From the NCBI GenBank assembly GCA_026936335.1, contig JAPMXV010000017.1, positions 124,001-188,000 on the forward strand: a stretch of 64,000 nucleotides of DNA, in the 5' to 3' direction. Made by a program: the position numbers and the translations under genes. Source of the DNA: Mantamonas sphyraenae STR306. Taxonomy: Eukaryota; Protista; CRuMs. Every line of letters starts with the position of its first letter. Within the stretch, counting starts at the first letter, position 1. The notes under the pieces were generated by a model, which had not been told where the DNA came from, did not search any database, and saw only the letters and a list, made by a program, of their open reading frames with translations. Below, piece after piece: positions 23,841-42,708 of this stretch.

Positions 23841-25089
23841 ATGTCGAGTACAATCAAGGAATAGTGCGTTGGTCCCCAGCCCACGAGGAAAATGCGCCTG
23901 CATTCCGTTTCCCTTTTGCAACACACGCCTTTCTGGGCCTGTGTTGTTTTGGGCCCGTGTGAAGCTGATCGCTAACACCAAAACACGTTCGGCTCTGCTT
24001 GTGCCTCCACACACGCCACAGTCGCGTTCTGATGCCCATGACCACGGAGGAGTACCACATCGGACAGCTGTACGCTGTGGCTCGCGCAAGCGCAGACGCC
24101 ACGGACGACAGCGAGGGTGTGGAGGTGCTGAAGAACGAGCCGTTCGAAGACGAGGCCCATGGAGGCAAGGGCCAGTACACCCACAAGATTTACCACCTGG
24201 GTTCCAAGATCCCGGGCTGGCTGGCCGCCCTCGCTCCGGCCGATGCTCTCAAGCTGGAAGAGGAGGCCTGGAACGCCTTCCCGTACTGCGAGACCGGTGC
24301 GTGTGCCCACACAGCGCCAAAGAGGGTCGGTGCGCAAGGACAACTCCGGACTCACTCCCGCTTCCTTTCCGTCCCACAGTCCAGCACCTTGTCTACCTTG
24401 GCGAGAAGTTTGAGGTGCGCATTGAGACCTGGCATTGCGACGACGACGGCACCCAGGAGAACGTGAGTTGCCCACCGGCACGCTGCACGGCCCCACTCAG
24501 GCCCACTTGATCCCAAATTGCTGCCACGCAAACTCCGTCGACGTCGCGCTGCCGCTCACACATGCATCCACACGTGTGCACCACACATCGTACGTGTGTG
24601 GCCATTCGCCGTGGCACACGCCGTTACACAACGCACAACCCACAGGTGCACAAGCTCGACGAGGACACGCTGAAGCAGCGCGAGGTGGTGAACATCGACA
24701 TCTCGGCAGAATACACCAACGAGTACAAGGAAGAGGAGGACCCGGCACTGTACCATTCGGAAAAGACAGGCCGTGGACCGCTGGAGGAGGGCTGGGAGAA
24801 GGAGGCCAAGCCGCTGATGTGCTGCTACAAGCTGGTGACCGCCCGCTTCCAATACTGGGGCTTCCAGACCAAGGTGGAAAACTTCATCCACGGCTTCACG
24901 CTGGACATGTTCACCAAGTTCCACCGCCAGTTGTTCTGCTGGCTGGACGAGTGGCACGGAATGACCATCGAGGACATCCGCGCCATGGAGGCCAAGGTCA
25001 AGGAAGAGCTTGCGGCCAAGCTCGGTGACAACGCCCAGGGAGAGAGCGCCATCGAGGACAAGAGCAGCAACAGCAGCAACAGCAAGTGA
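23841..25089 (+). CDS. Phosphatidylinositol transfer protein (START-like PITP)
   Basis: MSSTIKEY|RVLMPMTTEEYHIGQLY, GQYTHKIYHL, EEAWNAFPY, KTGRGPL, MCCYKLV, FHRQLFCWLDEWHGMTIEDIR; three introns. Confidence 0.95.
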
Positions 25090-25174
25090 TCAACCCATCA
25101 TCTCAAGGTGGTCCAGCAGCAAGGAGAGACACAGCACACGCAAATCAATCCCATCGCAGAGTCCGCTTCCAGCT

Positions 25175-26307
25175 TCATTCTTCCTCGTCACGGCTCACCA
25201 TCACGTTGCCCAAATCAATGAGAAACACCAACGTGCTGATCTTGTCGTGCACCGCAGTCACCATCGACGCGTCCACATGCAACGAAACCTTGTCCGGGTT
25301 GCTCTTGAGCTCGTCCAGCACCTCCTTGCTCACCAGCGCAAGCAGCTCCTCCGTCAGCTTCTCGATGCGAGCGGGCCTCTGCTCGCTGGGATTGCCCTTG
25401 AATACACTCACTTCCTCGTCGTCCAGGCCGCGCTGTTCAAACTGCAGCGCCTCCAGCGACCTTCGCACGTTTGCTTCCTCGTAGATCCCAAACATCTCGC
25501 TCACCGTCACCTCGCTGCCGTACTGAGTCAGCAGCGAGGGCAATTCCATGACCCCATCCTCGTACTCTTCGTCCGACTCGTCGTACACCACGCCGTCTCC
25601 CCCATACCCTCCCTCATTGGTCTCTACAGGAAAGTCAAACTCCTCGTCCGACTCTTCCTCCTCCTCACTCCCGCCTTCTTCCTCCTTGCCCACCTCCTCC
25701 GATCCCACTTCTTCCTCGTTTTCTTCCTCGGTGTCATTCATCCCCTGGCCCTGATCGTCCTCCTTGCCCTGTTCCGTCTCTCCAACGCCGCCAGCTGTGT
25801 CTGTGTCTTGAGCAACTCCTGCTCCAACTCTTCACATTCCTCTCCTGCACGATCCGCCTCATCCCTTTCCTGTTGCGGCCGCTCCTTTTGCGTCTCCGAG
25901 TCCTTGCGTGACTTTGACCGTGCCCTGGACCTGCGGATCTGCTTGATGTCAATCCCCGACACGCTCACCTCGCTATCCAGTGTCTTGCGCTGCTCCCGCA
26001 ACGCCTCCAGCTGTTGCGCCTGCCTACTTGCAATGTCATTTGCCTCTTTGCGTGCCAGCAGCGCCTGTCGTCGCTCCTCCCGCGATTGCCGTTGTGCCTC
26101 TCGCTCCGCTTCCAGCCTGGCTTTCTCCTCCCGCGCCTTGCGCAGCTTCTCCTGCAGCTGCTGCTCCTTCAGCTTCAGCGCTCGCTTTGGATCCCGAGGC
26201 GGTTGCTTGTGCACTTTGCGTCGCCGCATGGCTCCGGCTGACGGGCCCACGGCACGCCCTTCTTTGCTGCCGCCTCCGCCGCTGTTGCTGCTCTTCTTGC
26301 GCGGTGC

Positions 26308-26343
<36 letters not shown>

Positions 26344-27377
26344 TGCCTTTTCAGCAGAGGAGGAAGTGGACGATGACGATGACGACCCTGAGGACGACGC
26401 TGACGACGCCGACGGTTCGTTGCGCTCCAGGAATCGCTGGATGTGTTTCTTGATGAACCCCTTGGCCAGAATCGACTCGATGGACGGCCTCTGGTTGGGC
26501 GACTTGGCCAACATTGAGGCACACAGCAGACGCAGTTCCTTGGAGAAGCGTGACGGCAGCGACGGAGTCTTGCCGCTGATCACCTTTCGAGCCAGGCCGT
26601 CGATGCTCTTTGCGTTGAAGGCGTGCGAAAAGGTGCACATCTCGTACAAGATGCACCCCAAGCTCCAGATGTCGCTTGCAAACGAGTACGGCGAGTACTG
26701 CAGCACCTCGGGTGACATGTAGTACGGCGTCCCAATCATCGTCTGCGCAAGGTCTTCCTGGTTGTCCAGCAACTTGGCAATGCCAAAGTCGCCTAAGAGC
26801 AAACCGTTTCCGCAGCGACGGAATTGACTCGCGTTCGTGTCAGCGCGGTGCGCCTGCTCGTTTTGCCCATGGTCACTCCCTCCCATCCGATGTACCACTG
26901 CACATGGCCATGCCCACGTGGCAGCCTCCACTCACCTAGCTTGATGATTCGCTCTTTGTTTGTGAGAAAGATGTTCTGCGGCTTGAGATCGCGGTGCAGA
27001 ATGCAGCGTGTGTGCAGATACTTGAGAGCCAGTGCAATTTGGATAAACCAGTCCAGGACCTCGTCTTCTGTCAGTTCCTTGCCCTGGGCCTTGCGTGCCT
27101 TGAGCGACTCGTAGAGGTCGCCGCACTCGCAAAAGGCCATCACAAGGTGCAGCTGCTTGCGTTCCACAAACGACTCGCGGTACGAAACGATGTTGGGATG
27201 GTCCAAGCGAGACAGCAGCTTGATTTCCAAATCGGTGGCTTCCCTCTCCTTGGCAGGCAGATTGTGCAGGCTGATCTTCTTCACGCAGTACTGACGGTTG
27301 TCCGCAATCGAGCGCACCAGAAACACCTGGCCGTAGGAGCCCTCCCCAATCTTTTTGATGATGTTGTACGTGTCCAT
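25175..27377 (-). CDS. NIMA-related (NEK) Ser/Thr kinase with coiled coil; apparent frameshift near 25777-25782
   Basis: IGEGSYG, HPNIVSYRESF, WFIQIALALKYLH, HRDLKPQNIF, intron 26935-26793, DFGIAK, IGTPYYMSPE. The acidic tail continues in another frame. Confidence 0.9.
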
Positions 27378-27456
27378 GGCTGCGTTTGATGTCCCCCCTT
27401 CCAGTCACACACACGTGCGTTGGCGCATCCAGCGCAGAACCCACCCTCTCCTGGAC

Positions 27457-28014
27457 ATGAGCAGCACCACAAGCGGCAGCGACACAGAAGTGGTCGTCGA
27501 CGTGGAGAAACACGTGGAGGAGACAAAGGAGGACGACGACGACGACGACGAGGAAGAGGAAGAGGACGACGGGGACGACGACGACGAAGAGTTGCAGCTC
27601 GCTCTGCAGCTCAGTCTGGAAAAAGAGGTGCCCAAACTCGACAGCACATTTGTCGGTGCATGCAAGATGATCCTCGTGGCACGCAAGGATCTGAACATGG
27701 GCGCGGGAAAGCTGGCGGCGCAATGTTCGCACGCAGCCGTCGACCTGGTCGAGAAACTGCCCAATTGGGGCGCCCTTGGCAACCGTCTGAACCTGTTCTG
27801 GCGTGCCAACGGTGTGAAAAAGGTGGTCGTGCGTGTCGACTCCATGGACGAGTTTCGTGCAGTGCACAAGTCGGCCAAAGCACGCAATCTGCCCACGACG
27901 GTGATTCGCGACGCCGGCCGCACGCAAGTGGACCCCGGAACAACGACCGTGTTGGCCATCCTTGGCCCAGAGTGGATGATGGAAGATGTCACGGGACACC
28001 TGTCGCTGTATTGA
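27457..28014 (+). CDS. PTRH2: Peptidyl-tRNA hydrolase 2 with N-terminal UIM-like motif
   Basis: KMILVARKDLNMGAGKLAAQCSHA, KKVVV, IRDAGRTQV...TVLAI, VTGHLSLY. Confidence 0.9.
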   Translation: MSSTTSGSDTEVVVDVEKHVEETKEDDDDDDEEEEEDDGDDDDEELQLALQLSLEKEVPKLDSTFVGACKMILVARKDLNMGAGKLAAQCSHAAVDLVEKLPNWGALGNRLNLFWRANGVKKVVVRVDSMDEFRAVHKSAKARNLPTTVIRDAGRTQVDPGTTTVLAILGPEWMMEDVTGHLSLY

Positions 28015-28016
28015 AA

Positions 28017-29830
28017 TCATACGGTCTTGCGCACCCTCGCAAACTGGTCAAGGAGACCCTGAGTGGCCTCGTCGGACACCACCCACTTGGCCGCAGCGGC
28101 ATCGGTCTGCAGGAAGAACACGCCTGTGTCCGAGTCTGCGGTCAGATACGGGAAACGACGAGGACGCACCGAGCCGTCGATAAACTGGTGCTTCATCTTT
28201 TCGACAATGAGCTGCTTGCGGAAGAACGCGCTGTCCAGCAGCATTTTCCAGGCCACCATGTCGTTCCACGCCGGCAGAATGACAATAAACATGAGTGGCT
28301 GGTCGTTGCGCGACGCCTCTTCCAGCATGCTCTCCATGTGTTCGCAAGCACTCTGGGTCAGCTCCTCAATTGCCGGCGGATGCACCAGGCACGAGCCGCT
28401 GCTGGTGTGCCAGTCGTAGAAGGAGCCTTTGGAGCCAAAGTACACGTCGGTGTCCACAAACATGCTGCAGTAGTGTTCCAGCTGCACGTTGAACGGCGAC
28501 GCAAAGCACTCGGTGTCTGTGTCCCACGTCGCACGCAGGTATGCCATCACGTCGGGCGTGAGACACGTGTGGTAAATGTTGCCACCAAACGTGTGGTAGC
28601 GCATGGCCACACAAAACAAGCGCCTGTTGAACTCCTCCTCCGCATGGCCCTCGTTCTGGTACCGCCTCACAAGCGACGCGTGCGAATCCACACTCACCAC
28701 CACCGACGTGCCATCAAAGTCCACAGACAGTGCCGTCTCCTCCCCTTTTTCCGATTCCATCACTCGCACGGGCCGTTTGCTCCAGCAACGTCCTCCGGCG
28801 TCCTCCAGAATCGAGCAGTGCACCTCCTGCAACAGCTTCTCGCACAGCGTGCTCGCAGCCGTTTCAAACACCTCCTCCAGCTGCCGTGCAACCTCGTCCT
28901 GGTCCCTACATCGCCTTCCAATCTCCTTCTTCAGCGACACGTCGTTGTACGCCAGCTGCGGCAGGATGGGGTCTCCACCCACCTCAAAGAATTTCTGTAC
29001 AAACAGGAAGCGCTGCAGCGAGTTGCTGGGGTCCTTGGGCATGTAAAGGTCCTGACACACGCGTGTCAGCACACGCTGCAGCTGCCTCACCTGGTTTCGT
29101 CGCAGCACACCCATGTGCGGACAGTCCTCCACGTATTCGGCCGCCCCAGCAAGCTGTGCTCGCGCTTCCTCCTGCTGCAGCTGCCTCTCGCGCAGCAGGT
29201 TGACGTTTTGAAAGTACTGCAACGCCATGAGATCCCTGTCGCATGGATGCGTGACGAATGACATGGACAGGGAAACGGGGTGTGCCAGTGCCGTGCAGGG
29301 GGGGGGTGCCAGACGGTTCCGGCGTGTGTCAGCCATCCCTCTCCCACTCGCTCACGATCCAACGCGCCCCGGCGGCCCTCCAGGCCAATTGAGCGCCCCA
29401 CAACTCACTGTTTCTTGCTCAAGCCCGACGCATCAAAGGGAAGCACCGTCTTGCGCGCTGCACTGGGTCTTATCTCGATGCGTTCGTCGGAGCGAGAGGC
29501 GGCAGCAAAGGACGGGAAGGCCGCGGCCGAGACGGCGGACATGGCAGGCTGCGACGCATCGTCTGCCTCGCCGTCGTCCCGCTTGCGCTTGCGCGACGTG
29601 CCCTGTGGCGGCAGGTACTGGCTCTCACCCGTCTCTTCGTTGAAGAAGTATTGGTAGCCTGTGGAGGTGCTTTTGTGCACTGCCCACTTGGGAGGCAACA
29701 CCAGCGTCTCCACATACGGCAGCGTCTCCTCCTGTGCCTCCTGCTCCTTCTGCCCATCCGCAGCAGACCCTTCCGCCTCCATCGGTAGCTGCTCTCCGGA
29801 CGATGAGGACGACATGGCTGTCGATGACAT
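28017..29830 (-). CDS. PCIF1: PCIF1/CAPAM cap-adjacent adenosine methyltransferase homologue (WW domain + MTase fold)
   Basis: join(29830-29409, 29235-28017). WW LPPKWAVHKSTSTGYQYFFNEETGESQYLPP; ECFASPFN, YCSMFVDTDVYFGSKGSF, LMFIVILPAW, T.VFFLQ. Confidence 0.85.
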
Positions 29831-29919
29831 GACGTGGGGTGAGCTGGCGCCACTCGCGCGGCATCCTCTGCATGTGCTGTGTGTCTCAAGTTTGCACTTG
29901 CAATTCATTCATGGTTGCA

Positions 29920-32460
29920 TCACAGTTTGGCCAACAACACGCCACTGTGGTTGTGAACGCCAACGACGCGGCCGTCTCCGCGTGTGCCCGCGCCAACCTG
30001 CAGCTCGTGGTTGCACTTGCGCCGGTCCTGCTCGGCACAGCCCATCTCGCGCAGCTTGGCCACATGCTCGTCAATCTTGCGATACTGCCAGTGCATGCGA
30101 CTGTACAGGAACTGGCGCAAGTCGTACCGGTTGTCATCCGGCGAGTACGTTTCCATGTGCAGCGCTGGCGTCAACGTCGTCGTCTTGTGCCGGTTGATGG
30201 CATACATGCGGAAGAAGAACTTGACCTTGTTGGCCACCTCTTCGGCTGGCAACGATGACCAGATGGACAGCAGGCGCAGATACATCTCGTAGGGGCCACA
30301 GCGGGAAATCTTGCGCAGGCGCCCGTAGAACGACAGCTCCTCGTAGCTCATGCCCATGTCCTCCTCGTCTGTCTGTGTGTAGTTGCTGGTGATGGGCTCC
30401 AGTTCGGCGGTGGGCGGAGCGCCTGCAATTTCACTCAGTGTCGAGTAGCCCAGACGCAAACTGGCCCAGTGCAGAAAGCGTTTGAGATCCGTCTTGGAAA
30501 TCGACCCGATCGGGTTCAGATCGCCCGACGAGCAGTCATACTTGGTCATGTAGCCACGCAACGACTCGTCCACATTGGCACTGCTCAGCACCAGCAGACC
30601 TCCACGTTCGCCACGCGACCATTGCACCAGCTGGGCAAAGTAGTACGCAATCACCATCCTGCTGCGTGCTTGGATGTTCTGCAAGGCCAGGTTCTCCACC
30701 TCACTTCCCCCGTGCACCTTGAACTTGGGTTTCAGGCCAAAGTTGTCCGTAAACAGCTTCTCCAGTGCACCCGTCACCTCGTCGATGGTAACCTCCTTGT
30801 GGAAGGCGCCGATTTCCTTCGCCAGACGCTCGGCACGACCACGCGTGTCGTCGGAACTGTTGGTGGTGCCCATGTAGCATGTGACCAACACACTGTTGGC
30901 CATCTCTTCGGGTGCAGACGGCACACGGCCAACCACTCGCTCCACATCCTTGATCACCTCCTCGTTGCCGGCCTCCACCTGCTGCACCACAAGCTGACAC
31001 ATGGAGCCGACAATGGCCGCCACAGAGGCGCTGTCTGCACCGCCGCTCAGGGGCACAAAGAAGCCCGAAAGGCCCGAGCGACGCAAGTAATCCCACAGCC
31101 AGCAGGCTGGGCTGAGGGCAATCTCTTCCTCCGGGGTGTGGTAAAACACCTCGATAGGCTTGGTGGCCACCATGGTCATGGAAGAGCTCATGGGACAACA
31201 GGCACGAAAGTCCACCACCACGCTGGGGATGCGTTCGGCAATGGATGCCTGATGGGAGCGTGAAATGACGGCGGCTCGGTAGGACACAATCTCGTCCAGG
31301 TCGACCACGGCGTCAATGACCTCGACATCGCGCATGGAAAACTGTGAGGCCTGAGCAAGCAGGACGTCGTTGCTGGCAATCATGGCACAGCCGTCGTAGT
31401 AGAGACGGTCGCCGTCGCAACCCTGCTGGTTGGCGTACATGTACAAGCCGCCGCACTTGCGCACAGCACTCAGGATGAGGTTGACACGCGTGTCCAGCTT
31501 GCGCAGCTGGTGATGCGACCCACTTCCGTTGAGGATGATTTCCACGCCGTTGTTGGCCAGTTGGATGTGTGGGGAGTCGGGCGTGAACAGTTCTTCACAC
31601 AACTCTGTTCCCAGGCTCGTGTCACTCAGCTGCAGGTACGCCTCTCCAAATGGCACCGTCGACTGCCCTGTCAGTTCGGCAATCGCCTGCGGCAGCTGGT
31701 GCTGCTCCACCGTCCGCCGGTTGGGCCACGCCGTGAAATAGCGCTGCTCGCGGTAGTTGCCGTCGGACGCCAAGAAGATCTTGGGCCGGATCAACAGGAT
31801 CTTGCCATTCAGGCAAAACACACGGCAGTTGTAGCGCACCTGTGGGACACGGGCACACGCGTGGTCACAAACCACACCCATGGCAATGTACGTGTGAGCG
31901 TTACTGCGACCCGACGCCGCAAACGCGTCCTGTCGTCAAGTCTTCCTCGCTTCTTCTTGCCCGGGGACTCGGGGGGCTGTCCGCCCCTTGCCCACCACAA
32001 TGGTCACACATCACCACCCCCCACACGTCCCACTTACCGATCTGTGGATGACAGGCATGCCAATATCGCACACGATGTCGTTTGTGACGTCGCTGGCCAG
32101 CAACGTCGCAAGACTCTCCCATGAGTGCCGAACTGTGTCTCCCTCCAGAAACGCGTCCTGACACCCGTATCCACACCTGCCACGCACATGCACACACACA
32201 TCCGCCACACATCCCACAGTCACGTGCGTTGTCCATCCGCCCTCCTGTGTTAGCCCTGCCTTCCCCGCACGCACGGACCTCGTGTGCAATTCCTGGTTCC
32301 GATCACTCAACCCAACTCACAGCTCCAGTTCCGGCCCCAGACGCACGGTGCACCCACGATCCTTGGCTACCTGGATGCTTTTCATCGTCCGTTCCAGGTT
32401 GCCTTCAAAGTCCAGGCTCCACTGGTTCAGGTTGCATGTGGCAGTTTTGATCAAGCGCAT
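29920..32460 (-). CDS. NADSYN1: Glutamine-dependent NAD+ synthetase
   Basis: Exons ~32460-32321, 32176-32038, 31839-29920. [65 protein letters not shown]. Confidence 0.95.
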
Positions 32461-32472
32461 CGCTCCTTTGTA

Positions 32473-32498
32473 TTGTGGCGTTCCGCGCGCTGTGGTCA
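32473..32498 (+). repeat. Candidate left imperfect TIR
   Basis: TTGTGGCGTTCCGCGCGCTGTGGTCA after TA; partial match to the reverse complement of 41092-41117. Confidence 0.45.
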
Positions 32499-32514
32499 GC
32501 AACGCAAAACAAAA

Positions 32515-33534
32515 ATGACCGTCAAAACGAATGCAACGGGTGGGTCATACATCCACGGCAAAGCCTTTTCGGCGGACAAACGAGAATGCATTCTCTTTCA
32601 CTACCAATCCAGCTTGCGTCCTTCGTGCAGAGGCACAGCGGAGGCTCTCGGTGTGTCTCCTTCCGTCGTGTCCAAGATTGTACGTCAACACCGAGCCATG
32701 GGCCATGTACGCCCTCTTGTGGCCCAACCACCGTTCAGGCGTCTCCTGGATGCCAATGACGACCAATTCATTGCTGAACAGGTGGCCGATGATCCGCGAC
32801 TGTACCTGGACGAGTTGCAAGTAGCCGTTGCTCTTCATCGCAACAAGGTGGTATCTCTGTCCACAATTCGCCGTTCTTGTGCGCGCATGGGACTGACTCG
32901 CAAGAAGGTGAGTGCTATCGCCAAGCAACGGTTCAGGGAATCCACCGTGGCGCGCACACGCGAGTTTACTCGAGCAATGAGGATTCGCGGTGTGTTCCGA
33001 GCGCCGAACGTGGTCTTCTTGGACGAAACTGCAGTGAACAACAGAGTGTGCTACAGGAGATATGGTCGTGCGAAACGTGGGCAACCAGCGGTCGTTGTGG
33101 AGAACCATCCCAAGCAAAAGCGCATCAGCGTGCTGGCGGCCATCAGCACCGGTGGGCGCTCGCCACTGGTAGCGTACACAATGCGAGAGGGGTCATACAA
33201 CCGGCAGCTGTTTATGGAGTTCCTGGAGCAAGACCTCTTGCCCCGCATGCGAGATTGCCGCCAAACAGTTCTGGTCATGGACAACTGCTCCATCCACAAA
33301 GGCGATGCTGTACGCCAGCTGTGCACCTGGTATGGGGTGGATGTCGAGTTTCTCCCGCCTTGCACACCTACGCTCAACCCCATCGAGCTCATGTTTAGCA
33401 AGTTCAAGGCGGTCCTCCGCAGGGAATTTCATCGAGTGGACATTTGCACTTTCGCGGCGATCTGTACTGCATTGGGGCATGTTACGGCTGCTGATGTGAG
33501 GAACTGGGTCCATCACTGCGGGTACCGCATGTAG
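32515..33534 (+). CDS. IS630/Tc1-mariner transposase, DD34E, 339 aa, paired-like DNA-binding domain
   Basis: [29 protein letters not shown] (34 residues between D2 and E); [16 protein letters not shown]; LYLDELQ...VSLSTIRR...GLTRKK linker. Confidence 0.95.
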
Positions 33535-34850
33535 GATCGTGGAGCGTAGCCATTCAGGGCGCACGCTGGTGCTGAAAAACCCGTACTCCCATTGCCATCT
33601 TTGTGTCGGGGGGGCTCAAAGAGAAGCAGGGAGGGCTAAGTGGGGCACCTACAAGGCGTGGATAGTGCCCACCTCCCCTGGCAGCAGTCTCCTCAGTCAG
33701 GAGCGACCCCGTTGCAACCGGGCTTTGCGAACAGTACCATGCGCCCCGTGCATAAACAATCCATGGAACGCCTGCATACAGTCATCATGCCACATGGTCC
33801 TCTGGTTTTGGCTCCAACACCCGTGGGAGGAGCAGCATGCAGGTTGACGCCGTTGAGATGCACCCCTTGACACCCAGTACAATTATTGTGCACATGCGTC
33901 TCCCCTCAGCAGACCCATGTCCCAATATGTATCTACAAACACCATGAGACAGCGTGTGAAGCCCGATACCGTGGATTCACAACCTGATTTTCACGTAGCC
34001 TGACAAGGCGGTTCTTTGTGTCGTAGAGGACGGCCAAGGCCCCACGGCAAGGGGCGCTTCCTGCTGTAGTGTCTTGGTGTAGTCGCACAGCCTTTCCACT
34101 TGACTCTGTTTGGTTCCTGTGGACGTGTGCCACTTGCTGGTCACGCGACGGCAACGAAGCATCACTCTTTTGCCCGTGCGGTGCCCAGCGCTGCGTCTGC
34201 CGGTTTGGTGGGCAATCGGGCGTCGTACAGGGAGCATACTGAAAACGGGGACAGCACATCACACCCACATTTGCATGTAGAGGCGACGACGCAGCGCGAC
34301 GACGCGGCAACTTCTAGCCACTCATCAATTTTTCTTGGCGTTGTGGCCATGCCTCCTACCTTTCAACCCCTCCTCGGTGATCTATCTCCTGCTGGATTGA
34401 GTTTGCCAGGTACAAAACAGCCGAGACTCTATTGTGACGTGCAACGCCTGCGAAAGCAGCACCCCACCTTCCTCGCCCTCCTGGTCGTCCAGGTCCAGCT
34501 TCTGTTCCATCTGTTCCTCAACATCGTTACATGGGCCACTGTGCTCCTCAGCGACTGTGAACTGCAGGATCTCAACCCTCTGTGCCGGCAAACGGCCAAC
34601 GTGCGTTTCGATGTTCTCGTCGGCACGGCGTGCGCGGGGCCCTTCCAGAGCAGCAAGTGATGTGCGTAGGACTGTGTAGGATGGGGCTTGTGAACTGTGT
34701 GCAAGTGCTCGGGGGCGTCGGAGAGGGCAACAAGCTTTCTGCGGCATTTGACAGCGAGGCGCGAGGCTTGACGTTTGACAACTGACCTGCTCTGAAAAGC
34801 GGCGGCTGGCCCAAGTGCGCGGGTGGAGTCAATAGTTTCAAGAGTGTAGA

Positions 34851-37800
34851 ATGTCGATTCTGAAGTGTCAGCACCATAGCTGCAACAACGAGACAGTGCT
34901 CATGGTGTGCTGGGTAACGTCAGCCCCATCTCACGTGTCGCTGGTGTGTCCGACCTGTGTGGCCGACAACGAGTCGATTTCCCTGTACACACCACGAACA
35001 AGACTACCTGCAAATCTGGGCGAGCCCGAAGGTGACATGCAAGGGTACGCCAACGTCAACGGTGTCAACACCGCGAAGGTGGCATGCTGGGTGTCGTCCT
35101 ATTCAACTGCTGTGCGCGCCTCTCCACCTCTGCGAACGTCCATGTGCAAGTACCTTCTCGCATGGCTGGAGGCAACGACAGGCGGGAACGACCCGACCCA
35201 GTTGGGGCCTGAGCCTGGGGAGCAAGGTAAGCTCAAACCGCACTCAATCCCGCTGACCCGATTGCTCACCCGCCCCCTCTTCTTTGCGCCGGCACACACA
35301 GACCCCAGCGTCGTCAACACGGCCCTTCTGCGGCAGACCTGGTGCATGGCCATGTTCTGTGACGACGACATGTATGCCGTGGCCTGCAACGATCTCTTCC
35401 TTGCCGCTACAGCGCTCGCGGGGGGCGACGACCTGTGGGGTGACTCGGCAGATTTCCATCACCGCCTCGAGGTCGCATTCGACTCTGACTTCCCCATCCA
35501 GATGTTGCATGGTGGTACCCCCCCGCCAGCGGACGCCGCAGGGGTTGCAAAGCTTGCGGAGCGAGGAGCACTCCAGCAGCGTGTGGGCGAGGGCCTGCCG
35601 GAGCAAAACCAGCAAGTGCCCTTCGGGGTGCTCTGTTTCAAAGGGGCCCACTACACGGCATGGCTTCCACTGGCGGAAGGGAAATTCCGTGTGTACAATG
35701 ACCTTGCGCAGCAGCTGACTGACGAGGAGTGGCCCGCGCCTGAGCGTGCGCCCACGGGTTTCAGGCTGGTTTTCCTCAAGTCTCAACCGGAAAAGGAGTG
35801 GCGGTTGCCGTCTGCCATGGGCACCGTGGCTCTCGACAACAAATCAAACGTGTTCCGCAAGCCCATGGCCATCAAGGGCCCGCGAGTTGTGATGCAGAGC
35901 AAGGAGAGCTCCACCTCAGCTGCTGGGAGGCGTTTGTACGCGCATTCTGCACGGGCTCGTGGGACAACACCAGCGCCTCTGGGCAGGCCACCCTCGACTC
36001 GGGTGCAGGTTGCCGGGTCAACCGCATCTGTGCGTGGGCTCCGTTTCAACCGTGTGCCTGCCACGCAGACATCGGCAGCAGGGCAGCTGACACAGCTTCC
36101 GACTTCAAGCGGCGACAAGACGCCAGTGACCGCCAAGTATCTGGACGTGTTGAACGACAACTGGCAACCCCCACCTTTGGCTGACTCTGCTGTCAACGAG
36201 GGCGTGGAGGGTGGTGTGCAGCGTGGCGTCGCTGGGTCGGGGGGAACCCGCCTTGCCGCAGTGTACGTTGGCCTCAGCAGCCTCGCCGCTCGCTACTTGC
36301 ACCTCTCCGACCATACCATCACGCATCCCGCCACGTTCACCTCTGCCTGGCAATGGGTCACCACGATCCTCGACACTGTGTTGCCCAGATTGAGCAAGCT
36401 GTTTTCGACTCGCACGGTTGTGGTTGTGGACGACGTCGTGTCCACAGCCGCACTGTTTGCAGGTCGAGCCACGCCAGCCGAGCTGCAACGCTTCTACCAG
36501 CAACTGAGTGCAGCTGCGTCCCAGGACACCTTCTCCAACGCCAAGCAGCGAGCGTTCGCCGCTCGTGCCACTGTCACCACCCTGGCGCCAGTGATGCGCG
36601 ACTACCTTGCTGCCCATCAAGTGGCAACGATGTCACTGGACGAGTTCGTCACAAACCAGGCCGTCAGAAATAAGGCCGTCAGAAACCAGGCCGCCAAAAA
36701 CCAGGTCAAGGCCGAGGACGATGTCGTTCTGTGCCACCGCGAGGGGCGTCTCATGGCTGGCCTCGCACTCCATGGGTCAGCTCCGGGGCTGCGGGTTGTC
36801 AACATCTTCAACGCCCATGTGGTGGACACGAAGAAAGTGCACGCCAAAGCGACGTCATGGAAACTGATAACCTGGGCCAATGGAGTCAAGAAGAAGCCCA
36901 AAAAGGGGAAGACGACAAAGACCAAATCGCGAGGGAAAACATCGATCAAGAGTGACGACGAAAAGAAGGAAGAAGAGACTGAAGCGCTGAGGAAGCAGCT
37001 GCTCACGGTGGGTCTGGAGGAGACCGAACGTGACCATGGTCCCATGTCGGCCGTCGCCTTGGCGCAAGCAGTCTGCCAGCGACTTGGAGGAGTGCATGGT
37101 CTCGATCATCAACGCGCGCAGACCGTGATGGAGTCGTTCAGCAGACTGTGTACGCAGGCCAAGCCGAAACCGCGCTCAGTGGAGGAGTTGGCACAAGCAT
37201 TGGGCTTGACTGAGGTCAACATCACCTACAACCACAAGCCAGAGCTGAAGAACACCGATGACACCCGTATGCATATGGAGTACACGCTCGGGCGTGGCCA
37301 CAGTGCACGGGAAGGGACGCTGCACGTGCAGGAATTGCCATTCCATCTCGCACAGGGCATTCACAAGGATGTTGCGAAGGCCATGGTGGGCCAGGAGGAC
37401 GCCACGGAGCCGGACGAGGAGGACTGTGCGGTGCCCTACCTGCTGACGGCAACTGAAGCCGAAATCGCGCAGCTTGTGGAGGAGATTCCTGCTGGCTTTG
37501 ATGCATCTGTCTTCAAAAAGAACAAGGAGGAGTCACTCGGTTCCCGTGAGGCCGTTACAAGGTGGACATCTGTTCCACATGTGATCACAGCACGGCACGA
37601 GAAACAACTGGCAGTGCTCGTGCGGAAGGATGGCCAGGTGCTTCGCCCTCCTGCGACGCCATCATCAGCGACCCGTGCGGACCTATTCGAGGTGGCGCTC
37701 CAGACAGGGGCAACAACAGAGGGCGAGACATTGACGCCGCTCAAGGATGCTTTTTATGACAAGGATGACGTGAAGGGAAGCCAGCGGGGGCGACCCGTGT

Positions 37801-40800
37801 GGATTCCGCACGGTTTTGATTTCGCCACGCTGCTGCCTTCGGCCACGGCGATCAGGGAGCACGATTTTGTTGAGTACCAGAGCGATCTCAAGAAGAATCT
37901 GAAGCTGGAGGCGAACGTGCGTGGGCTGGGAAAGAGCGAGGCTGACGTTCTTGGAGCGTTGGCGGACTGTATGCTCGTGCAAACAGCCTTGCTTCGAGCA
38001 TGGTTCGTCGACCAGGTGATTCCAGAGGTGAAAAAGGACCCAACTGCATGGTTCACTGCGCCCCATGGACGCCAGCAATCGGTGGATGGCAGCGACGAGC
38101 AGGAGGAGGCGGAGCTGGATGAGGTGGAGCTGGATGAGGCGGAGCTGCCAACAGAGGATCAGACGATGATTGACGGGATGGTGGTCGACGGGATGGTGGA
38201 AGTTCACAGCCGCGTGAAGCCCTTCTACCTGCTCGAAGCGTCCACGGCTCTGCGCACAGTGGCGACGCACAACCTCAAGGTACTCAAGGAGAACGTGGAC
38301 ACCCCAGAGGAGCTCAAGTCTGTACGATTTACCAGGAACGGGATACAGAAGGCGGGCGATGGTCAACATGGTTTCGACTTTTCCTTCATGGTCACGCGTC
38401 TGAAGGTGGATCTTTCGGAGGCGCCCGTGTCGAGCATGGCCAATGACATCGCTCGTGCCTTCAATGGCAGCCTGCAGTCGGCCATCTCCTTGTGTGCCTA
38501 CCCGATGATCGTGGCGCTGATGAGGAACGGGGCGCCCAGCGAGCTGCCCATGTCCGCCATCGTGGCCAGCGTCGCCGCGCTCATGCGTACAAGCTATGCA
38601 AAGACCAAGAAGGCGTTCCAAACCCACCAGGTGTCGACAAAGGACACACGTGACTTTGTGTTCTCTCAGCCCATCCACAAGGCCACAAAGGCTGCTGCCG
38701 CGGCTGCTGCTCACTCTTCAGTGGAGGTCCAGGGGCCCTCCATGGATGTGCAGGAGTCCTCCATGGATGTGCTGCCCTCTGTGGATGTGGAGTCATCCAT
38801 GGATGTGCAGGAGTCCTCCGTGGATGTGCTGCCCTCTGTGGATGTGGAGTCATCCATGGATGTGCAGGAGTCCTCCGTGGATGTGCTGCCCTCTGTGGAT
38901 GTGGAGTCATCCATGGATGTGCAGGAGTCCTCCGTGGATGTGCTGCCCTCTGTGGATGTGGAGTCATCCATGGATGTGCAGGAGTCCTCCGTGGATGTGC
39001 TGCCCTCTGTGGATGCGCAGCGCTCACAAGGTGTATCTCCATGGGACCCGTACGAGGAAGTGTGCACAAGTCTCTCGGATCAACTCGGCAAGCACGTGCG
39101 TGGCAAACGGGACGCGTTGTCTGTGCTGTTGGATGTGATGCTCAAGCCCGACCTGAAGACCAATCTCAAAAGCACACAAGCAAAGCGCGCCATTGCATCG
39201 ACAGCAGCATCATTGGACTGTGTTGACGCGATGTTTCCCGGTCCGGTTGACATTGGCGGCCAGTTCGTCTTCGGCGCGTACTCCGTCAAGACGTACGCGT
39301 TTAAGATCTTTGTGAACACCATGGAAGCAAGGTGGAAAGCACATGGAACGCCGAACGGGAATGCCAACCCAGATGACCCCCCGGACGCCAACCCAGATGA
39401 CCCCCAAGACGCCAACCCGGACGCCAACCCGGACGCCAACCCGGACGCCAACCCGGACGCCAACCCAAACGACCCCCCAGACGCCAACCCGAACGCCAAG
39501 TCGGACGCCAACCCGGGTTGGTGGAATGCACTGAAAGAACGCGAGTGGGTTTTGACGGATGAGGCCATCCCGAGTCTCCCTAAATGGCTCAAGCAGGCAG
39601 TGTATCGGTGTCGGTATGCTCGTCGCATGCCAGAAAACAATGACGAGGATACTCAGCCAGTCCAACACTGGGCAGGAGAGCGGCCGCTGCAAACCGTGCC
39701 TCTGAAGTCAATACTCATGCTCACGCGCGGCGTTGGCACGAAAAACGCAAGGTGCCTGCTGAAGAACGTCAGCGCCAGCAGCATGCGCATGCTCTCTGGT
39801 GGAATCGCCGCTCAGGGGAAGTACAGGCGAGCCTTGGTGTTACAGCCACCAAGAGTTCACACTCTCCTGCCTTCACCGGCGAGCCTCGCAACATTGATCA
39901 GGCCAAGGATGGCTCATCTCCTGCCCCTTCTGCTGGACCCCAAGAAGAACGCGCTGATTGCCCTTGCCGTACTGAACCCAACGGGCATGCCAGACGCGCT
40001 GGTGGAAGCCGTCCAGCAGATCGCGCCTGGCTTTCCGGATTGCCCTGTTCCGAAGCGTGGCTTGGTCGAGCACGTCAAGGCCTTTGCCAAGAATGGATAC
40101 GCAGTCCTTGAGCATGCACGCAAGGTGCTGTGGATCAGCATTGACCCTGGTCGTGGACGCGACTGGGTCGAGGCGATCTTTGTGCGGGACGGCCAGCTGT
40201 ATGTGGCCACCTTGCCCCTGGACAGCCACGATGTGCAGGCACACAAGGCAGGGCAGGACCGAGTGCTGGCGTCGTACACGGACTTCAAGGAGGAGTACAA
40301 GCAACGTGTCTTCGGAAAAGATTTGCACAAGGATGCGAAGCACATGCGTGCGCAGTACGCAACGTTTCGCAAACGAAGGATGGCAGGCGTGCGTGAGATG
40401 ATCTCCGTGATCCACAAGTTCCGCGCACATCTGGGCCTGGAGCAGGTGATTGTGCTGCAGCCGACAAAGACGTTTGGCGGACGCGGGAAATCGCAGGAGA
40501 TGCGGGAGATGCTGGCCAACCACTTTGTGGTCATTGCAGCAGACGAGAGGTATACATCGCAGCAGTGCTTCTGTGGCAGCGCTGTCGACAACTTGGACGA
40601 CTTTGGCGCTGAGAAGTTTGGGCGATGGCGGACGTGCAGCAGCCACTGCCTGTCGGACATCGACTCCAACATGTTTGACGCCACCAAGCAGCTCAAACGC
40701 TTTGCACAACGGCACGCATGCAAAGAGATGGAGGGCGAGGGTGAGCACAACTTGCACCAGGCAGTTCAGAGAGACCGAGGCTCTGCACACTGCATCTTCT

Positions 40801-41012
40801 GGCGGCAGATGCTCTTCTTTGTCACAGGCGTCTGGATGGAGAAGCCAACAAAGAAAATCAAGGTGCAACGCAAGGCAGCAGACAAGGCAGGCGAGAGAAG
40901 CAAGAAGAGAAGAGATGAGGAAGTGGGGGAAGAAGAGGATTCGGGTGGGTCACAACCACAACAGCATGCTCCCAAGCGACAAAGGGTACAGCGACCAAGG
41001 ATAGGCAAATGA
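34851..41012 (+). CDS. Giant Fanzor (TnpB-like RNA-guided RuvC nuclease), 2053 aa, with N-terminal USP-like cysteine-protease domain
   Basis: RuvC-I WISIDPG (D1765); RuvC-II strand VIVLQP lacking E; alternative catalytic DERYTSQQCFC (E1899); zinc finger CFC...CSSHC; RuvC-III QRDRGSAHCI (D1975); basic NLS-like tail. Lies beside a Tc1/mariner transposase. Confidence 0.85.
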   Translation: MSILKCQHHSCNNETVLMVCWVTSAPSHVSLVCPTCVADNESISLYTPRTRLPANLGEPEGDMQGYANVNGVNTAKVACWVSSYSTAVRASPPLRTSMCKYLLAWLEATTGGNDPTQLGPEPGEQGKLKPHSIPLTRLLTRPLFFAPAHTDPSVVNTALLRQTWCMAMFCDDDMYAVACNDLFLAATALAGGDDLWGDSADFHHRLEVAFDSDFPIQMLHGGTPPPADAAGVAKLAERGALQQRVGEGLPEQNQQVPFGVLCFKGAHYTAWLPLAEGKFRVYNDLAQQLTDEEWPAPERAPTGFRLVFLKSQPEKEWRLPSAMGTVALDNKSNVFRKPMAIKGPRVVMQSKESSTSAAGRRLYAHSARARGTTPAPLGRPPSTRVQVAGSTASVRGLRFNRVPATQTSAAGQLTQLPTSSGDKTPVTAKYLDVLNDNWQPPPLADSAVNEGVEGGVQRGVAGSGGTRLAAVYVGLSSLAARYLHLSDHTITHPATFTSAWQWVTTILDTVLPRLSKLFSTRTVVVVDDVVSTAALFAGRATPAELQRFYQQLSAAASQDTFSNAKQRAFAARATVTTLAPVMRDYLAAHQVATMSLDEFVTNQAVRNKAVRNQAAKNQVKAEDDVVLCHREGRLMAGLALHGSAPGLRVVNIFNAHVVDTKKVHAKATSWKLITWANGVKKKPKKGKTTKTKSRGKTSIKSDDEKKEEETEALRKQLLTVGLEETERDHGPMSAVALAQAVCQRLGGVHGLDHQRAQTVMESFSRLCTQAKPKPRSVEELAQALGLTEVNITYNHKPELKNTDDTRMHMEYTLGRGHSAREGTLHVQELPFHLAQGIHKDVAKAMVGQEDATEPDEEDCAVPYLLTATEAEIAQLVEEIPAGFDASVFKKNKEESLGSREAVTRWTSVPHVITARHEKQLAVLVRKDGQVLRPPATPSSATRADLFEVALQTGATTEGETLTPLKDAFYDKDDVKGSQRGRPVWIPHGFDFATLLPSATAIREHDFVEYQSDLKKNLKLEANVRGLGKSEADVLGALADCMLVQTALLRAWFVDQVIPEVKKDPTAWFTAPHGRQQSVDGSDEQEEAELDEVELDEAELPTEDQTMIDGMVVDGMVEVHSRVKPFYLLEASTALRTVATHNLKVLKENVDTPEELKSVRFTRNGIQKAGDGQHGFDFSFMVTRLKVDLSEAPVSSMANDIARAFNGSLQSAISLCAYPMIVALMRNGAPSELPMSAIVASVAALMRTSYAKTKKAFQTHQVSTKDTRDFVFSQPIHKATKAAAAAAAHSSVEVQGPSMDVQESSMDVLPSVDVESSMDVQESSVDVLPSVDVESSMDVQESSVDVLPSVDVESSMDVQESSVDVLPSVDVESSMDVQESSVDVLPSVDAQRSQGVSPWDPYEEVCTSLSDQLGKHVRGKRDALSVLLDVMLKPDLKTNLKSTQAKRAIASTAASLDCVDAMFPGPVDIGGQFVFGAYSVKTYAFKIFVNTMEARWKAHGTPNGNANPDDPPDANPDDPQDANPDANPDANPDANPDANPNDPPDANPNAKSDANPGWWNALKEREWVLTDEAIPSLPKWLKQAVYRCRYARRMPENNDEDTQPVQHWAGERPLQTVPLKSILMLTRGVGTKNARCLLKNVSASSMRMLSGGIAAQGKYRRALVLQPPRVHTLLPSPASLATLIRPRMAHLLPLLLDPKKNALIALAVLNPTGMPDALVEAVQQIAPGFPDCPVPKRGLVEHVKAFAKNGYAVLEHARKVLWISIDPGRGRDWVEAIFVRDGQLYVATLPLDSHDVQAHKAGQDRVLASYTDFKEEYKQRVFGKDLHKDAKHMRAQYATFRKRRMAGVREMISVIHKFRAHLGLEQVIVLQPTKTFGGRGKSQEMREMLANHFVVIAADERYTSQQCFCGSAVDNLDDFGAEKFGRWRTCSSHCLSDIDSNMFDATKQLKRFAQRHACKEMEGEGEHNLHQAVQRDRGSAHCIFWRQMLFFVTGVWMEKPTKKIKVQRKAADKAGERSKKRRDEEVGEEEDSGGSQPQQHAPKRQRVQRPRIGK
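38739..39014 (+). repeat. 57-bp in-frame tandem repeat (~4.8 copies; SMDVQESSVDVLPSVDVES)
   Basis: Near-identical units with period 57 (e.g. 38794 and 38851), each built from 21+18+18-bp subrepeats. Confidence 0.95.
39360..39516 (+). repeat. 12-bp-based in-frame repeat encoding DANP/DDPP
   Basis: GACGCCAACCCG repeated; protein NANPDDPPDANPDDPQDANPDANPDANP... Confidence 0.95.
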
Positions 41013-41117
41013 TCGGCCTACAGATCCAAATCCACAGGCTTACCCATACTACCTTGTCGCACCATGTGGTGCATCGACTAGCCGAAGGCCATGTGCACAG
41101 CCATGTGGCCAATACAA
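41013..41117 (+). ncRNA. Candidate Fanzor omegaRNA scaffold
   Basis: Lies between the Fanzor stop and the inferred right end. Stems 41013-41020/41079-41085, 41059-41064/41067-41072 (extended by GTC/GAC) and 41087-41095/41102-41110. Confidence 0.55.
41092..41117 (-). repeat. Candidate right imperfect TIR
   Basis: Reverse complement TTGTATTGGCCACATGGCTGTGCACA; followed by TA at 41118-41119. Confidence 0.45.
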
Positions 41118-41129
41118 TATTGCTTCCAC

Positions 41130-42708
41130 TCACGCCACACACTCCTGCAACTTGCTGGCCGTCTTGACCAGCGTGCGGTACCGTTTGATGTACAGCTGGA
41201 TGCGTTTCATGGTGCGCTCGACCTTGCGAATGGTCTTGTCGTCGGCATGCTGAGCCACATCCTCGTGCAGCTTCTCCTCCCAGAGCTTCATCAGACGTGT
41301 GTGGTCGCTGCGCACACGTTCCACCTCCTTCTGTGCCATCTCCACCTCCTCGCGACTCTCGGCAGCCGTCTGCTCCGCCAACACGCGGCGATGCATCACG
41401 TCCGCTTCAATCAGCCCCAACGCCGCCTGCTGCTGCTCCAACCGCGCCTTCAGCGCCTCCTTCTCCTCCACCAGAGCGTCCAATTGCTCTCCCAGCGCCT
41501 CCACGTTGCGATTCACCTTTGCCACCGCTGCAGCCGACGCTGAGGATGACGAGGACGCACTCGCAATCTCCAACTGCGCCGCTTGTGCGTCCAGCTGTGC
41601 CGTGCGTGCCACCAGAGCGGCCTCTTGTGCCTGCGTCTCGCCGAGCTTCCCGTGCAGCTGCTGGTACTCGCGTGCAGTGGCCAGCGACTTCAGAAACGCC
41701 TCATCGTTTGCCGCATCCGACGTCGTCGTCGGCACCACCGCCTCCTTGCCCTGCAACTTGCGCAGCTCTGCTTCAATGTTCACCGTGCGCTCGTAGATGC
41801 GGTTCGGCACGGCGTCGGCCAGGAACTCGTCCAGCTTGCCCGATGCAATCGGCAGCTCGTCCTCGACCTCCTTGATCGGCTCATTCGACGCCTCTTCCAC
41901 CGCCTCTGCGACAACACTGGACTCTGGCTGTTGGTTGGTCCCCTCCTCTGCTTCTTCCACGCCAGGGATGTCTGCAAATGCAACCGCCTTGGTGGTGGCG
42001 ACGGTGGCGGTTTCCTCCTCTGCCTGTGCGTTGTTTGCAGCCAGTGCCGGGGTCGACATGATCTGCACCGCTGCGTTCTCCTCCACAGGCGAACGTGCAA
42101 GGCCGCCTCCACGTTTGAACGGATCCACGCCCATCGGCGTGACCGGCTGCTCCTGCGCAGGCGCGGCAGGCGCGGCAGAGACCGTTTCCACAGGAGTGCG
42201 TGCAAGCCCACCTCCGCGACTGAACGGATTGTTGTTGTTGGTGGTGGTGGTGGTGGTGGTGGTGGTGGCCGTGGTGTCCGCAACCGTTGCGGTCTCCACA
42301 CGCGGTTGCGTCTTGATCTGCTCCACCGGTGTGCGTGCAAGTCCGCCTCCACGCTGGAACGGGTTGCCGGCTCCACCAGCTCCCATCAGCTGCTCCTCCT
42401 CGGCTTCCTGAACCTCCACCTTGTCCTCTTTCTCCTCTGCAACTGCCACTGTCTCTTGGCGCGCTTGCACTTGCACGGGTGTCCTTGCCAATCCACCACC
42501 GCGCTGGAACGGATTGCCTCCTCCGCCCATCTCCACGCGTGCCTGTGTCTTGACTTGTTCCACTGGGGTGCGTGCAAGCCCACCGCCACGCTGGAACGGA
42601 TTGCCAGCTCCACCACCAGCTCCCATCAGCTCCTCGTCATCATCATCCTGCTGCGTTGCCATCCCGGTGCTGTTCGTCGTCGTCGTCGTCGAATCAGCAA
42701 CCGGGTCA

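Follow-up and report, generated by a model that had tools for sequence, protein, structure and literature searches.

The locus analysed here raises the question of whether a eukaryotic DNA transposon can carry a Fanzor, a member of what are to our knowledge the only RNA-guided DNA nucleases of eukaryotes, as the terminal part of a protein of about 2,000 amino acids (aa). The locus lies in a stretch of 64,000 nt (hereafter the window) of the Mantamonas sphyraenae STR306 assembly GCA_026936335.1, corresponding to positions 124,001 to 188,000 of contig JAPMXV010000017.1. An earlier note, made from the sequence alone, had read one block of the window as an IS630/Tc1-mariner transposon carrying a giant Fanzor. 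We followed up this reading in the whole assembly, which comprises 25 Mb in 78 contigs (numbered with a C, the window being C17:124001-188000) with ~60% G+C. Our data point to an autonomous cut-and-paste DNA transposon of the Tc1/mariner-IS630 type whose two-exon cargo gene encodes a protein with a strongly diverged Fanzor C-terminus, a reading that we consider probable as a whole. The features of the element are collected in Table 1.

When positions 32300-41300 were compared with the whole assembly by BLAST, full or near-full copies with 97-98% identity were found on C41, C58, C40, C14 and C44. C57 carries a composite copy, C29 a truncated one, C68, C52 and C71 diverged ones and C34 a degenerate one, making at least 10 copies genome-wide that fall into three subfamilies. 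The matches start and end at the same bases in all copies (window 32469-32471 and 41119), and junction alignment showed conserved termini that read TTGTGG... on the left and ...CCAATACAA on the right. Window positions 32471-41119, the very borders proposed in the earlier note, are thus one copy of a sharply bounded mobile element of 8,649 bp. The TA that the note had seen on both sides is part of a 2-bp duplication across the copies, which reads TA/TA in C17, C40, C41, C44, C52 and C58, TG/TG in C14 and TT/TT in C68. Since the dinucleotide changes at both ends together in C14 and C68, it represents a true 2-bp target duplication, usually TA. No empty insertion site was found in the assembly.

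The flanks are unrelated between copies on both sides, with the exception of C41, whose left flank matches that of the window copy over at least 8.5 kb (~100% identity; window 24000-32470 including NADSYN1; C41:146512-154990). This shared flank is what would favour the view that the large open reading frame (ORF) is a host gene, or that the block is a segmental duplication, and not transposon cargo. The right flank of the C41 copy differs from that of the window, which is unique in the genome, suggesting either that copies recombined ectopically or that the assembly was joined wrongly at the repeat; the C41 element itself shows no difference from the window copy in the transposase (100% identity over the first ~1.1 kb) and is 95-98% identical beyond. 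The identical borders, the 2-bp duplications and the unrelated flanks of the other copies all speak against a host gene or a segmental duplication, as do the copies on C52 and C71, which are transposase-deleted, non-autonomous derivatives that have retained the same ends. Moreover, the transposase and the giant gene are always found together within shared ends at unrelated loci, indicating that the giant gene is cargo. The outcome that the earlier note had named as fatal to its reading, two ORFs that never co-occur and a large one that belongs to the host, is contradicted by these data. A host-gene origin of the large ORF was rejected by the copy and flank analysis, and we regard this whole alternative as extremely improbable.

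The first gene of the element encodes a transposase matching Pfam DDE_3 (E 2e-25, 89.8 bits against a cut-off of 28.6), in which the triad D170, D256 and E291, with 34 residues between the last two, is of the DD34E type, as the note had recognized. Its N-terminal matches to HTH_23, PAX, HTH_Tnp_Tc3_2 and HTH_32 are weak (E 0.002-0.018, each below cut-off), and a sequence search against the PDB gave no match. The transposase is intact in C14, C40, C44, C57, C58 and C68 (98.5-99.7% aa identity), frameshifted in C41 and deleted past residue 92 in C52 and C71. Both genes are intact in at least five copies, the target duplications are intact, and the copies are 95-98% identical with a synonymous divergence (dS) of ~0.05. 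The element is thus recent, as had been suggested, and from its sequence it looks autonomous, in line with the note's 'probably autonomous'. One feature weighs against a simple assignment to this superfamily. Tc1/mariner-IS630 elements carry terminal inverted repeats of ~20 nt or more, and the ends here share 4-6 nt at most (TTGT, or TATTGT with the duplication). Long or bipartite inverted repeats were considered and rejected, as the similarity of the ends is no better than in shuffles (the best local alignment was equalled by 684 of 2,000). Ends with so little inverted similarity are unusual in this superfamily.

The second gene fills most of the element. The 2053-aa ORF reported in the earlier note is present at 34851-41012 and encodes ~2028 aa once spliced, being an in-frame read-through of a 75-nt intron; the description of the block as intronless was thus not correct. 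The GTAAGC donor, the CTGAC branch-like site and the CACAG acceptor are conserved in all copies, and the interior of the intron is hypervariable in length and sequence with indels that are not multiples of three, so that in most other copies the frame of the giant gene changes near residue 136-150, across the intron. The exons were searched separately or via an in-frame read-through reference. Exon 2 is open for 1,746-2,031 aa in C14, C40, C44, C52, C58, C68 and C71, and the gene is intact in eight copies of the three subfamilies. Between subfamilies, dN/dS amounts to 0.15-0.45 for the giant gene overall and is 0.13-0.49 in every 200-codon block (dS 0.6-2.6), indicating that the whole giant gene is protein-coding and constrained, and the N-terminal 1,300 aa are 47-63% identical. 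Divergence between subfamilies almost disappears over the last ~400 codons (dS ~0.06) and at the transposase end. The elements are mosaics, with shared ends around a divergent middle, a pattern also noted by Bao & Jurka for Mariner-Fanzor elements (PMC3627910).

The C-terminal part of the giant protein was compared with the published definitions of Fanzor. The Fanzor-defining motif is D-X(125,275)-[TS][TS]-X-X-[C4 zinc finger]-X(5,50)-RD (PMC3627910), and the protein contains D1765, then 136 residues, T1902-S1903-Q-Q, a finger formed by C1906, C1908, C1929 and C1933, another 40 residues, and R1974-D1975. Fanzors are further distinguished from ordinary TnpB by a DPG in RuvC-I and by a glutamate six residues before the finger (PMC10711439; PMC10530073), which correspond here to D1765-P-G and to E1899, six residues before C1906. 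The DPG motif is invariant, even in the degenerate C34 copy, and the DPG, the relocated glutamate and the RD motif are present and identical in every intact copy. The relaxed published pattern matched the protein once, at 1765-1938, and matched none of 20,000 shuffles of it.

Profile and language-model searches pointed in the same direction. The Pfam TNB model (PF07282, Cas12f1-like_TNB) matched with E 0.036 in the window protein and 0.023-0.029 in the two diverged subfamilies. An hhalign comparison of the family with a set of TnpB-like proteins, consisting of same-genome proteins and two database TnpBs, gave 74% probability and E 2.8e-5 over the segment of strand, glutamate, finger and aspartate. 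Among the 30 named clusters closest to the protein by features in the ESM Atlas, 23 contain PF07282 and/or PF26935 (score 0.96, 180 shared features), the neighbours being mostly giant-virus and green-algal proteins; this score was reached by ~1 in 100 shuffled proteins. The RuvC region also matched a dozen other open frames of 1,680-1,760 aa in the same genome with E ~1e-7.

Several results weigh against the Fanzor assignment. The strict Fanzor pattern calls for two CxxC knuckles 12-18 residues apart and an aspartate 4-8 residues after the second (PMC10711439). It fails here, as the knuckles are CxC and CxxxC and lie 20 residues apart; D1938 is 4 residues past the finger. The RuvC-III aspartate is ambiguous, since hhalign and MAFFT align D1936/D1938 with the RD of TnpB-like proteins, and the alternative D1975 fits the X(5,50)-RD rule (PMC3627910). 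The Pfam TNB scores of 14.7-15.3 bits are under the curated cut-off of 26.3 bits, a search of the genome with PF01385 gave no match, and the giant protein matched none of the NCBIfam TnpB models. In the PDB, the family profile did not pick up any chain of TnpB, Cas12 or Fanzor, this profile and a single-sequence search returning low-complexity or antibody-like chance matches only, and phmmer with aa 1556-2053 found no match among 1.84 billion proteins. A full-length search with the giant protein recovered no long relative, a search with the C-terminus of a 1,822-aa giant paralogue (C44:11700-17463) and scans of viral and metagenome contigs recovered no relative at all, and a search with a mixed alignment returned two bacterial TnpB-like proteins only. 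An AlphaFold model of the C-terminal 611 aa, built with five similar sequences aligned, was unusable, with a predicted local distance difference test score (pLDDT) of 30.

A rival reading takes the likeness to TnpB and Fanzor as a matter of chance short motifs in an unrelated, lineage-specific accessory protein of the transposon. In its favour, there is no database match at a curated threshold, the structure model failed, and the hhalign match spans 52 columns only at its 74% probability, falling to 9% against one giant paralogue. Chance similarity is hard to reconcile with four linked motifs that stand in the right order and spacing and were not reproduced in the shuffles, with a language-model search that independently led to TNB clusters, with the same-genome links, and with a genome full of giant frames that carry above-cut-off TNB domains, some of them in a transposase-then-giant-gene layout. 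We therefore consider chance similarity very unlikely. Descent of the C-terminal domain from a Fanzor, as judged from these motifs and profiles, appears very likely; that it acts as an RNA-guided nuclease is a less certain proposition. Of the RuvC and zinc-finger motifs claimed in the earlier note, the DPG, the relocated glutamate and the four-cysteine finger held up at the level of sequence, along with weak profile matches, and the finger spacing proved non-canonical and the Pfam match sub-threshold.

The giant frames just mentioned were revealed by a PF07282 search of the assembly, which found 39 places, at least 29 of them above cut-off. Open frames of 1,483-2,087 aa contain most of these places, and a few fall in frames of ordinary size (633-849 aa). 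In five cases a giant TNB frame is preceded, at a distance of 6-7 kb and on the same strand, by a DDE_3 gene, indicating that the layout of a transposase followed by a giant Fanzor is recurrent in this genome. The N-terminal parts of the other giant frames have no detectable similarity to those of the window element's family.

The N-terminal ~1,400 aa of the giant protein appear from subfamily alignment to be an element-specific conserved extension, made up of a Cys4 knuckle, a possible peptidase, a block of ~950 aa and repeat linkers. Exon 1 contains a conserved four-cysteine pattern, CxxxxC...CxxC (the Cys4 knuckle), and a stretch resembling the USP Cys box, with an invariant C79 in ACWVS; it gave no match in Pfam. 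At the start of exon 2, Q162, C165, H267 (in GxH(Y/F)TAW) and D284 are invariant at ~50% overall identity, and C79 or C165 is the candidate catalytic cysteine. AlphaFold modelled aa 152-350 as a helical part followed by a sheet (predicted template modelling score 0.61, pLDDT 54), and the weak structural neighbours of this region are papain-fold proteins, including the TssM USP-like deubiquitinase, Josephin, C39 peptidases, USPL1 and several USPs. None of these matches is significant, the best being E 0.03 in Foldseek (the TssM USP-like deubiquitinase) and Z 4.2 in VIA (Josephin-2); the Atlas score was 0.84 by features, a lead only, and the template modelling score by shape was at most 0.38. 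Sequence searches with the N-terminus in Pfam and the PDB gave no match, to a peptidase family or otherwise. A USP/papain-like peptidase is thus a suggestive reading of the N-terminus, and the 'extra enzymatic domains' of the earlier note, for which there are invariant residues and weak structural neighbours, are not established. The region of aa 345-1290 is 53-63% identical between subfamilies with many invariant blocks, and it has no Pfam match, no PDB profile match and no paralogue in its own genome outside the element family.

These observations bear on another explanation, namely that the Fanzor-derived domain no longer cuts DNA, or that cutting is not its main activity, and that it is a DNA-binding module, RNA-guided or simple, delivering the N-terminal part, for example a peptidase for ubiquitin-like modifiers, to the element or its target. 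The non-canonical finger spacing and the ambiguous RuvC-III aspartate would agree with this, the conserved extra stretch of 1,400 aa, kept by purifying selection, points to a role in its own right, and the invariant Q162, C165, H267 and D284, together with papain-fold deubiquitinases as weak structural neighbours, would suit such a peptidase. Against it, the DPG, the relocated glutamate and the RD motif are identical in every intact copy, the bias for TG in the left flank (see below) fits a nuclease with a target-adjacent motif (TAM), and no peptidase family reaches significance. We judge the binding-module explanation unlikely. Returning to a Fanzor domain that would cut DNA, a wider interpretation may be offered, tentatively and with considerable doubt: giant Fanzors could be a separate, eukaryote-specific enlargement of the TnpB scaffold, in which an RNA-guided RuvC core is permanently fused to a large effector block and the guide RNA brings a second activity to the target, with several families in one genome and some of them in autonomous Tc1/mariner elements. 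In the family described here, the effector block would possibly comprise a peptidase for ubiquitin-like modifiers and the ~950-aa region.

Signs of a guide system were sought at the two ends of the element. Directly left of the left TA, G occupies position -1 in 9/9 independent insertions and T position -2 in 7/9, and the right flanks of the same insertions show no matching bias. Such a one-sided bias is not expected of a symmetric transposase. In the SpuFz1 elements, a conserved CA lies upstream of the left repeat and the measured TAM is CATA (PMC10432273); by analogy, TGTA is the predicted TAM here. At the other end, the 107-nt 3' untranslated region (UTR) has three variable columns in 10 copies of the three subfamilies (~0.7% pairwise divergence). 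As dS in the adjacent codons is 0.02-0.07, the 3' UTR is ~five times more conserved than nearby synonymous sites. By the same analogy, a guide RNA may be produced from this right end; the 'apparently complete' RNA-guided (OMEGA) system of the note is not established. Two points count against this interpretation: the low divergence of both ends could be due to recombination between copies and not to selection, and the folding of the right end is barely better than that of shuffles, 6-8 of 200 of which were equally stable (z between about -1.9 and -2.0; -1.96 for the 3' non-coding end). The right end had no match in Rfam and offered no covariation to test. The 'structured 3' end' described in the note is thus weakly supported by folding, in which a 9-bp hairpin is predicted, although the 107-nt 3' UTR is strongly conserved.

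Based on these features, we propose how the element might work. The transposase would move the element, and an RNA from the conserved 3' end, reading into the right flank, would guide the Fanzor domain to the emptied donor site beside TGTA. Cleavage of the emptied site, followed by repair from a filled copy, would then allow the element to be retained or copied. Retention through cleavage and repair has reportedly been shown for bacterial TnpB. The transposase targets a symmetric TA and the predicted TAM is TGTA, a difference that would allow the homing model to be tested cleanly in this eukaryotic cut-and-paste element. What the sequence data themselves show is the mobility of the element, its borders and target duplication, the bias of the left flank, the intron, the catalytic motifs and a coding constraint that extends along the giant gene; nuclease activity, guidance by RNA, the TAM, a part in homing and any activity of the N-terminal region are inferred.

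Table 1. Features of the element in the window and paired genes elsewhere in the assembly (window positions unless a contig is given)
Feature	Position	Strand	Basis or remark
Conserved flank dinucleotide TG outside the left duplication	32469..32470	+	flank bias
Left target-site duplication TA	32471..32472	.	junction comparison
Element left end, begins TTGTGG	32473..32514	+	sharp border in 9 copies
Transposase gene, 339 aa, Tc1/mariner-IS630 type, DD34E	32515..33534	+	Pfam DDE_3
Spacer between the two genes	33535..34850	+	length differs between subfamilies
Giant gene exon 1 (aa 1-125)	34851..35226	+	start codon and Cys residues kept in three subfamilies
Giant gene spliceosomal intron, 75 nt	35227..35301	+	in frame and stop-free in the window copy
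Giant gene exon 2, including stop codon	35302..41012	+	open in seven further copies
Candidate papain/USP-like peptidase region (aa 152-350)	35304..35900	+	His-box-like GxHYTAW...YND
Conserved region of ~950 aa (aa 345-1290) with lysine-rich/acidic low-complexity inserts	35883..38720	+	subfamily alignment
57-nt minisatellite, 4.9 copies, 19-aa Ser/Asp/Val-rich repeat	38739..39015	+	Tandem Repeats Finder, 99% matches
Fanzor-like core (aa ~1395-2000): presumed WED/REC part, RuvC, zinc finger	39033..40850	+	motifs, profiles
12/24-nt repeats for (A/D)NPD units, inserted in the Fanzor-like core towards its N-terminus	39363..39516	+	Tandem Repeats Finder
RuvC-I motif DPG (D1765)	40143..40151	+	read from sequence
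Relocated RuvC-II glutamate E1899, TS pair, four-Cys finger	40545..40649	+	C1906-x-C1908...C1929-xxx-C1933
RuvC-III Asp candidates D1936/D1938 or R1974-D1975 (RDxxSAxxI-like)	40656..40775	+	alignment versus motif
Basic C-terminal tail resembling a nuclear localization signal	40860..41001	+	141-nt unit
3' non-coding right end, candidate guide-RNA scaffold and/or transposase-binding end	41013..41117	+	conservation
9-bp hairpin in right end	41087..41110	+	predicted fold
Right target-site duplication TA	41118..41119	.	junction comparison
DDE_3 gene/giant TNB frame pairs	C2:227k/233k (227110/233531); C11:278k/271k (278184/271587); C57:111k/105k; C44:318k/325k (318368/325419); C10:88k/94k		

The element sits tightly between two host genes. 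The left TA lies 10 nt upstream of the start codon of NADSYN1 (minus strand, ATG at 32460), whose exon 1 ends at a GTGAGT donor, in agreement with the intron-containing host region described in the earlier note, and on the other side 10 nt separate the right TA from the stop codon (41130-41132) of a gene for a 785-aa protein on the minus strand. Without the element, ~22 nt would separate NADSYN1 from this gene, too little for a terminator and a promoter.

Other parts of the element vary between subfamilies. The spacer is 1318-1320 nt long in the main copies and 790 nt in C57/C68, and its first ~736 nt alone align (79%). The stretch of ~34268-34850 (~580 nt upstream of the giant gene start) is present in the main subfamily only, and parts of it (within 34319-34841) are 82-83% identical to unrelated loci on C16 and C8, which makes it a nested insertion or a captured fragment. 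The 57-nt minisatellite is missing from the C68 and C52 subfamilies and the (A/D)NPD repeats vary between subfamilies, both being specific to the main subfamily; matches resembling circumsporozoite proteins were dismissed as spurious, being caused by the NPDA repeats. The 141-nt tail unit is tandemly duplicated in frame, once or twice, in C40, C52, C68 and C71, and a lone fragment array of it is found at C15:335960-336343. A 56-nt piece inside the giant ORF (36188-36243) matches ~25 loci with 86-88% identity, mostly 2.6-4.5 kb from contig ends, so that it looks like a subtelomeric repeat.

Some further Fanzor-like proteins of this genome were recorded. A 634-aa Fanzor of ordinary size at C44:207917-211102 matches the mimivirus Fanzor2 structure 9b0l (E 4e-12), with a DDE_3 gene (C44:207327-207743) ~2 kb away on the same strand. 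A 765-aa Fanzor-like protein (C6:53252-56449) bears terminal Ser/Glu/Asp-rich repeats with SMD and LPVD pieces, which resemble the 19-aa repeat of the giant protein. The copy of the element on C44 lies ~300 nt from the inferred 5' end of the gene for the 1,822-aa giant paralogue, on the opposite strand.

If the reading of this element is true, it would show that the Fanzor scaffold can carry large extra modules in nature, and it would offer a natural case for what such modules add, for example chromatin access, modifier removal or repair-pathway choice. It would also mean that standard searches miss whole Fanzor branches, as the giant family is brought to light neither at the Pfam cut-offs nor by phmmer against 1.84 billion proteins. 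In a text search of the literature, the terms 'giant Fanzor' and 'large Fanzor' did not turn up in any paper.

Among known systems, SpuFz1/Spu-1 of Spizellomyces punctatus (Saito et al. 2023, PMC10432273) is similar in being multi-copy, with the nuclease gene beside a conserved right end, in having two conserved nucleotides outside the left end followed by TA (CA+TA as the TAM in SpuFz1; TG+TA as the predicted TAM here), and in sharing the DPG of RuvC-I and the relocated glutamate. SpuFz1 differs in that it has 638 aa in an element of ~2.1 kb with 30-nt inverted repeats and no transposase of its own (PMC10432273), whereas the system here, known from sequence alone, has ~2,028 aa, 8.65 kb, its own DD34E transposase and ends that share 4-6 nt. 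The Mariner-type Fanzor elements (PMC3627910; PMC10530073) resemble it as autonomous, TA-flanked elements with a transposase and a Fanzor, whose relatives share the 5' transposase part and differ downstream, the same mosaic as here. Published Fanzors have a mean of 620 residues (PMC10530073) and reach ~800 (PMC10711439); the giant protein is 2.5-3 times larger than published Fanzors. It also differs from them in its conserved 1,400-aa N-terminal extension and in a family that sequence searches with standard models do not detect.

With the bacterial TnpB of IS200/IS605, the proposed likeness lies in a right-end guide that reads into the flank, a TAM that is the sequence left of the insertion, and element retention promoted by cutting of the emptied site (10.1101/2023.11.20.567912). 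TnpB differs in its ~400-480 aa, its Y1 or serine transposase partner, the lack of a target duplication and a glutamate that is usually canonical. Cas12 is alike in that a TnpB-derived RuvC core has been enlarged by large extra regions. Its enlargement is internal to the core, through REC and other insertions, and is linked with CRISPR arrays, whereas the extra mass of the giant protein, which a eukaryotic transposon encodes, stands apart at the N-terminus as a block of its own that repeat linkers connect to the core. The other giant TNB frames of the same genome are of similar length, have a terminal TNB domain and in at least five cases lie downstream of DDE_3; they differ in that most are above the Pfam cut-off, which the window family is below, and in their unrelated N-terminal parts. 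It is already known that Fanzors occur in autonomous Mariner/Tc1 elements flanked by TA duplications (PMC3627910; PMC10530073), that their glutamate is relocated, that their genes can contain introns and that the TAM is linked to the insertion site. What is new here is the size of ~2,028 aa, the conserved N-terminal block, the atypical finger, the near-absent inverted repeats and the number of families in one small genome.

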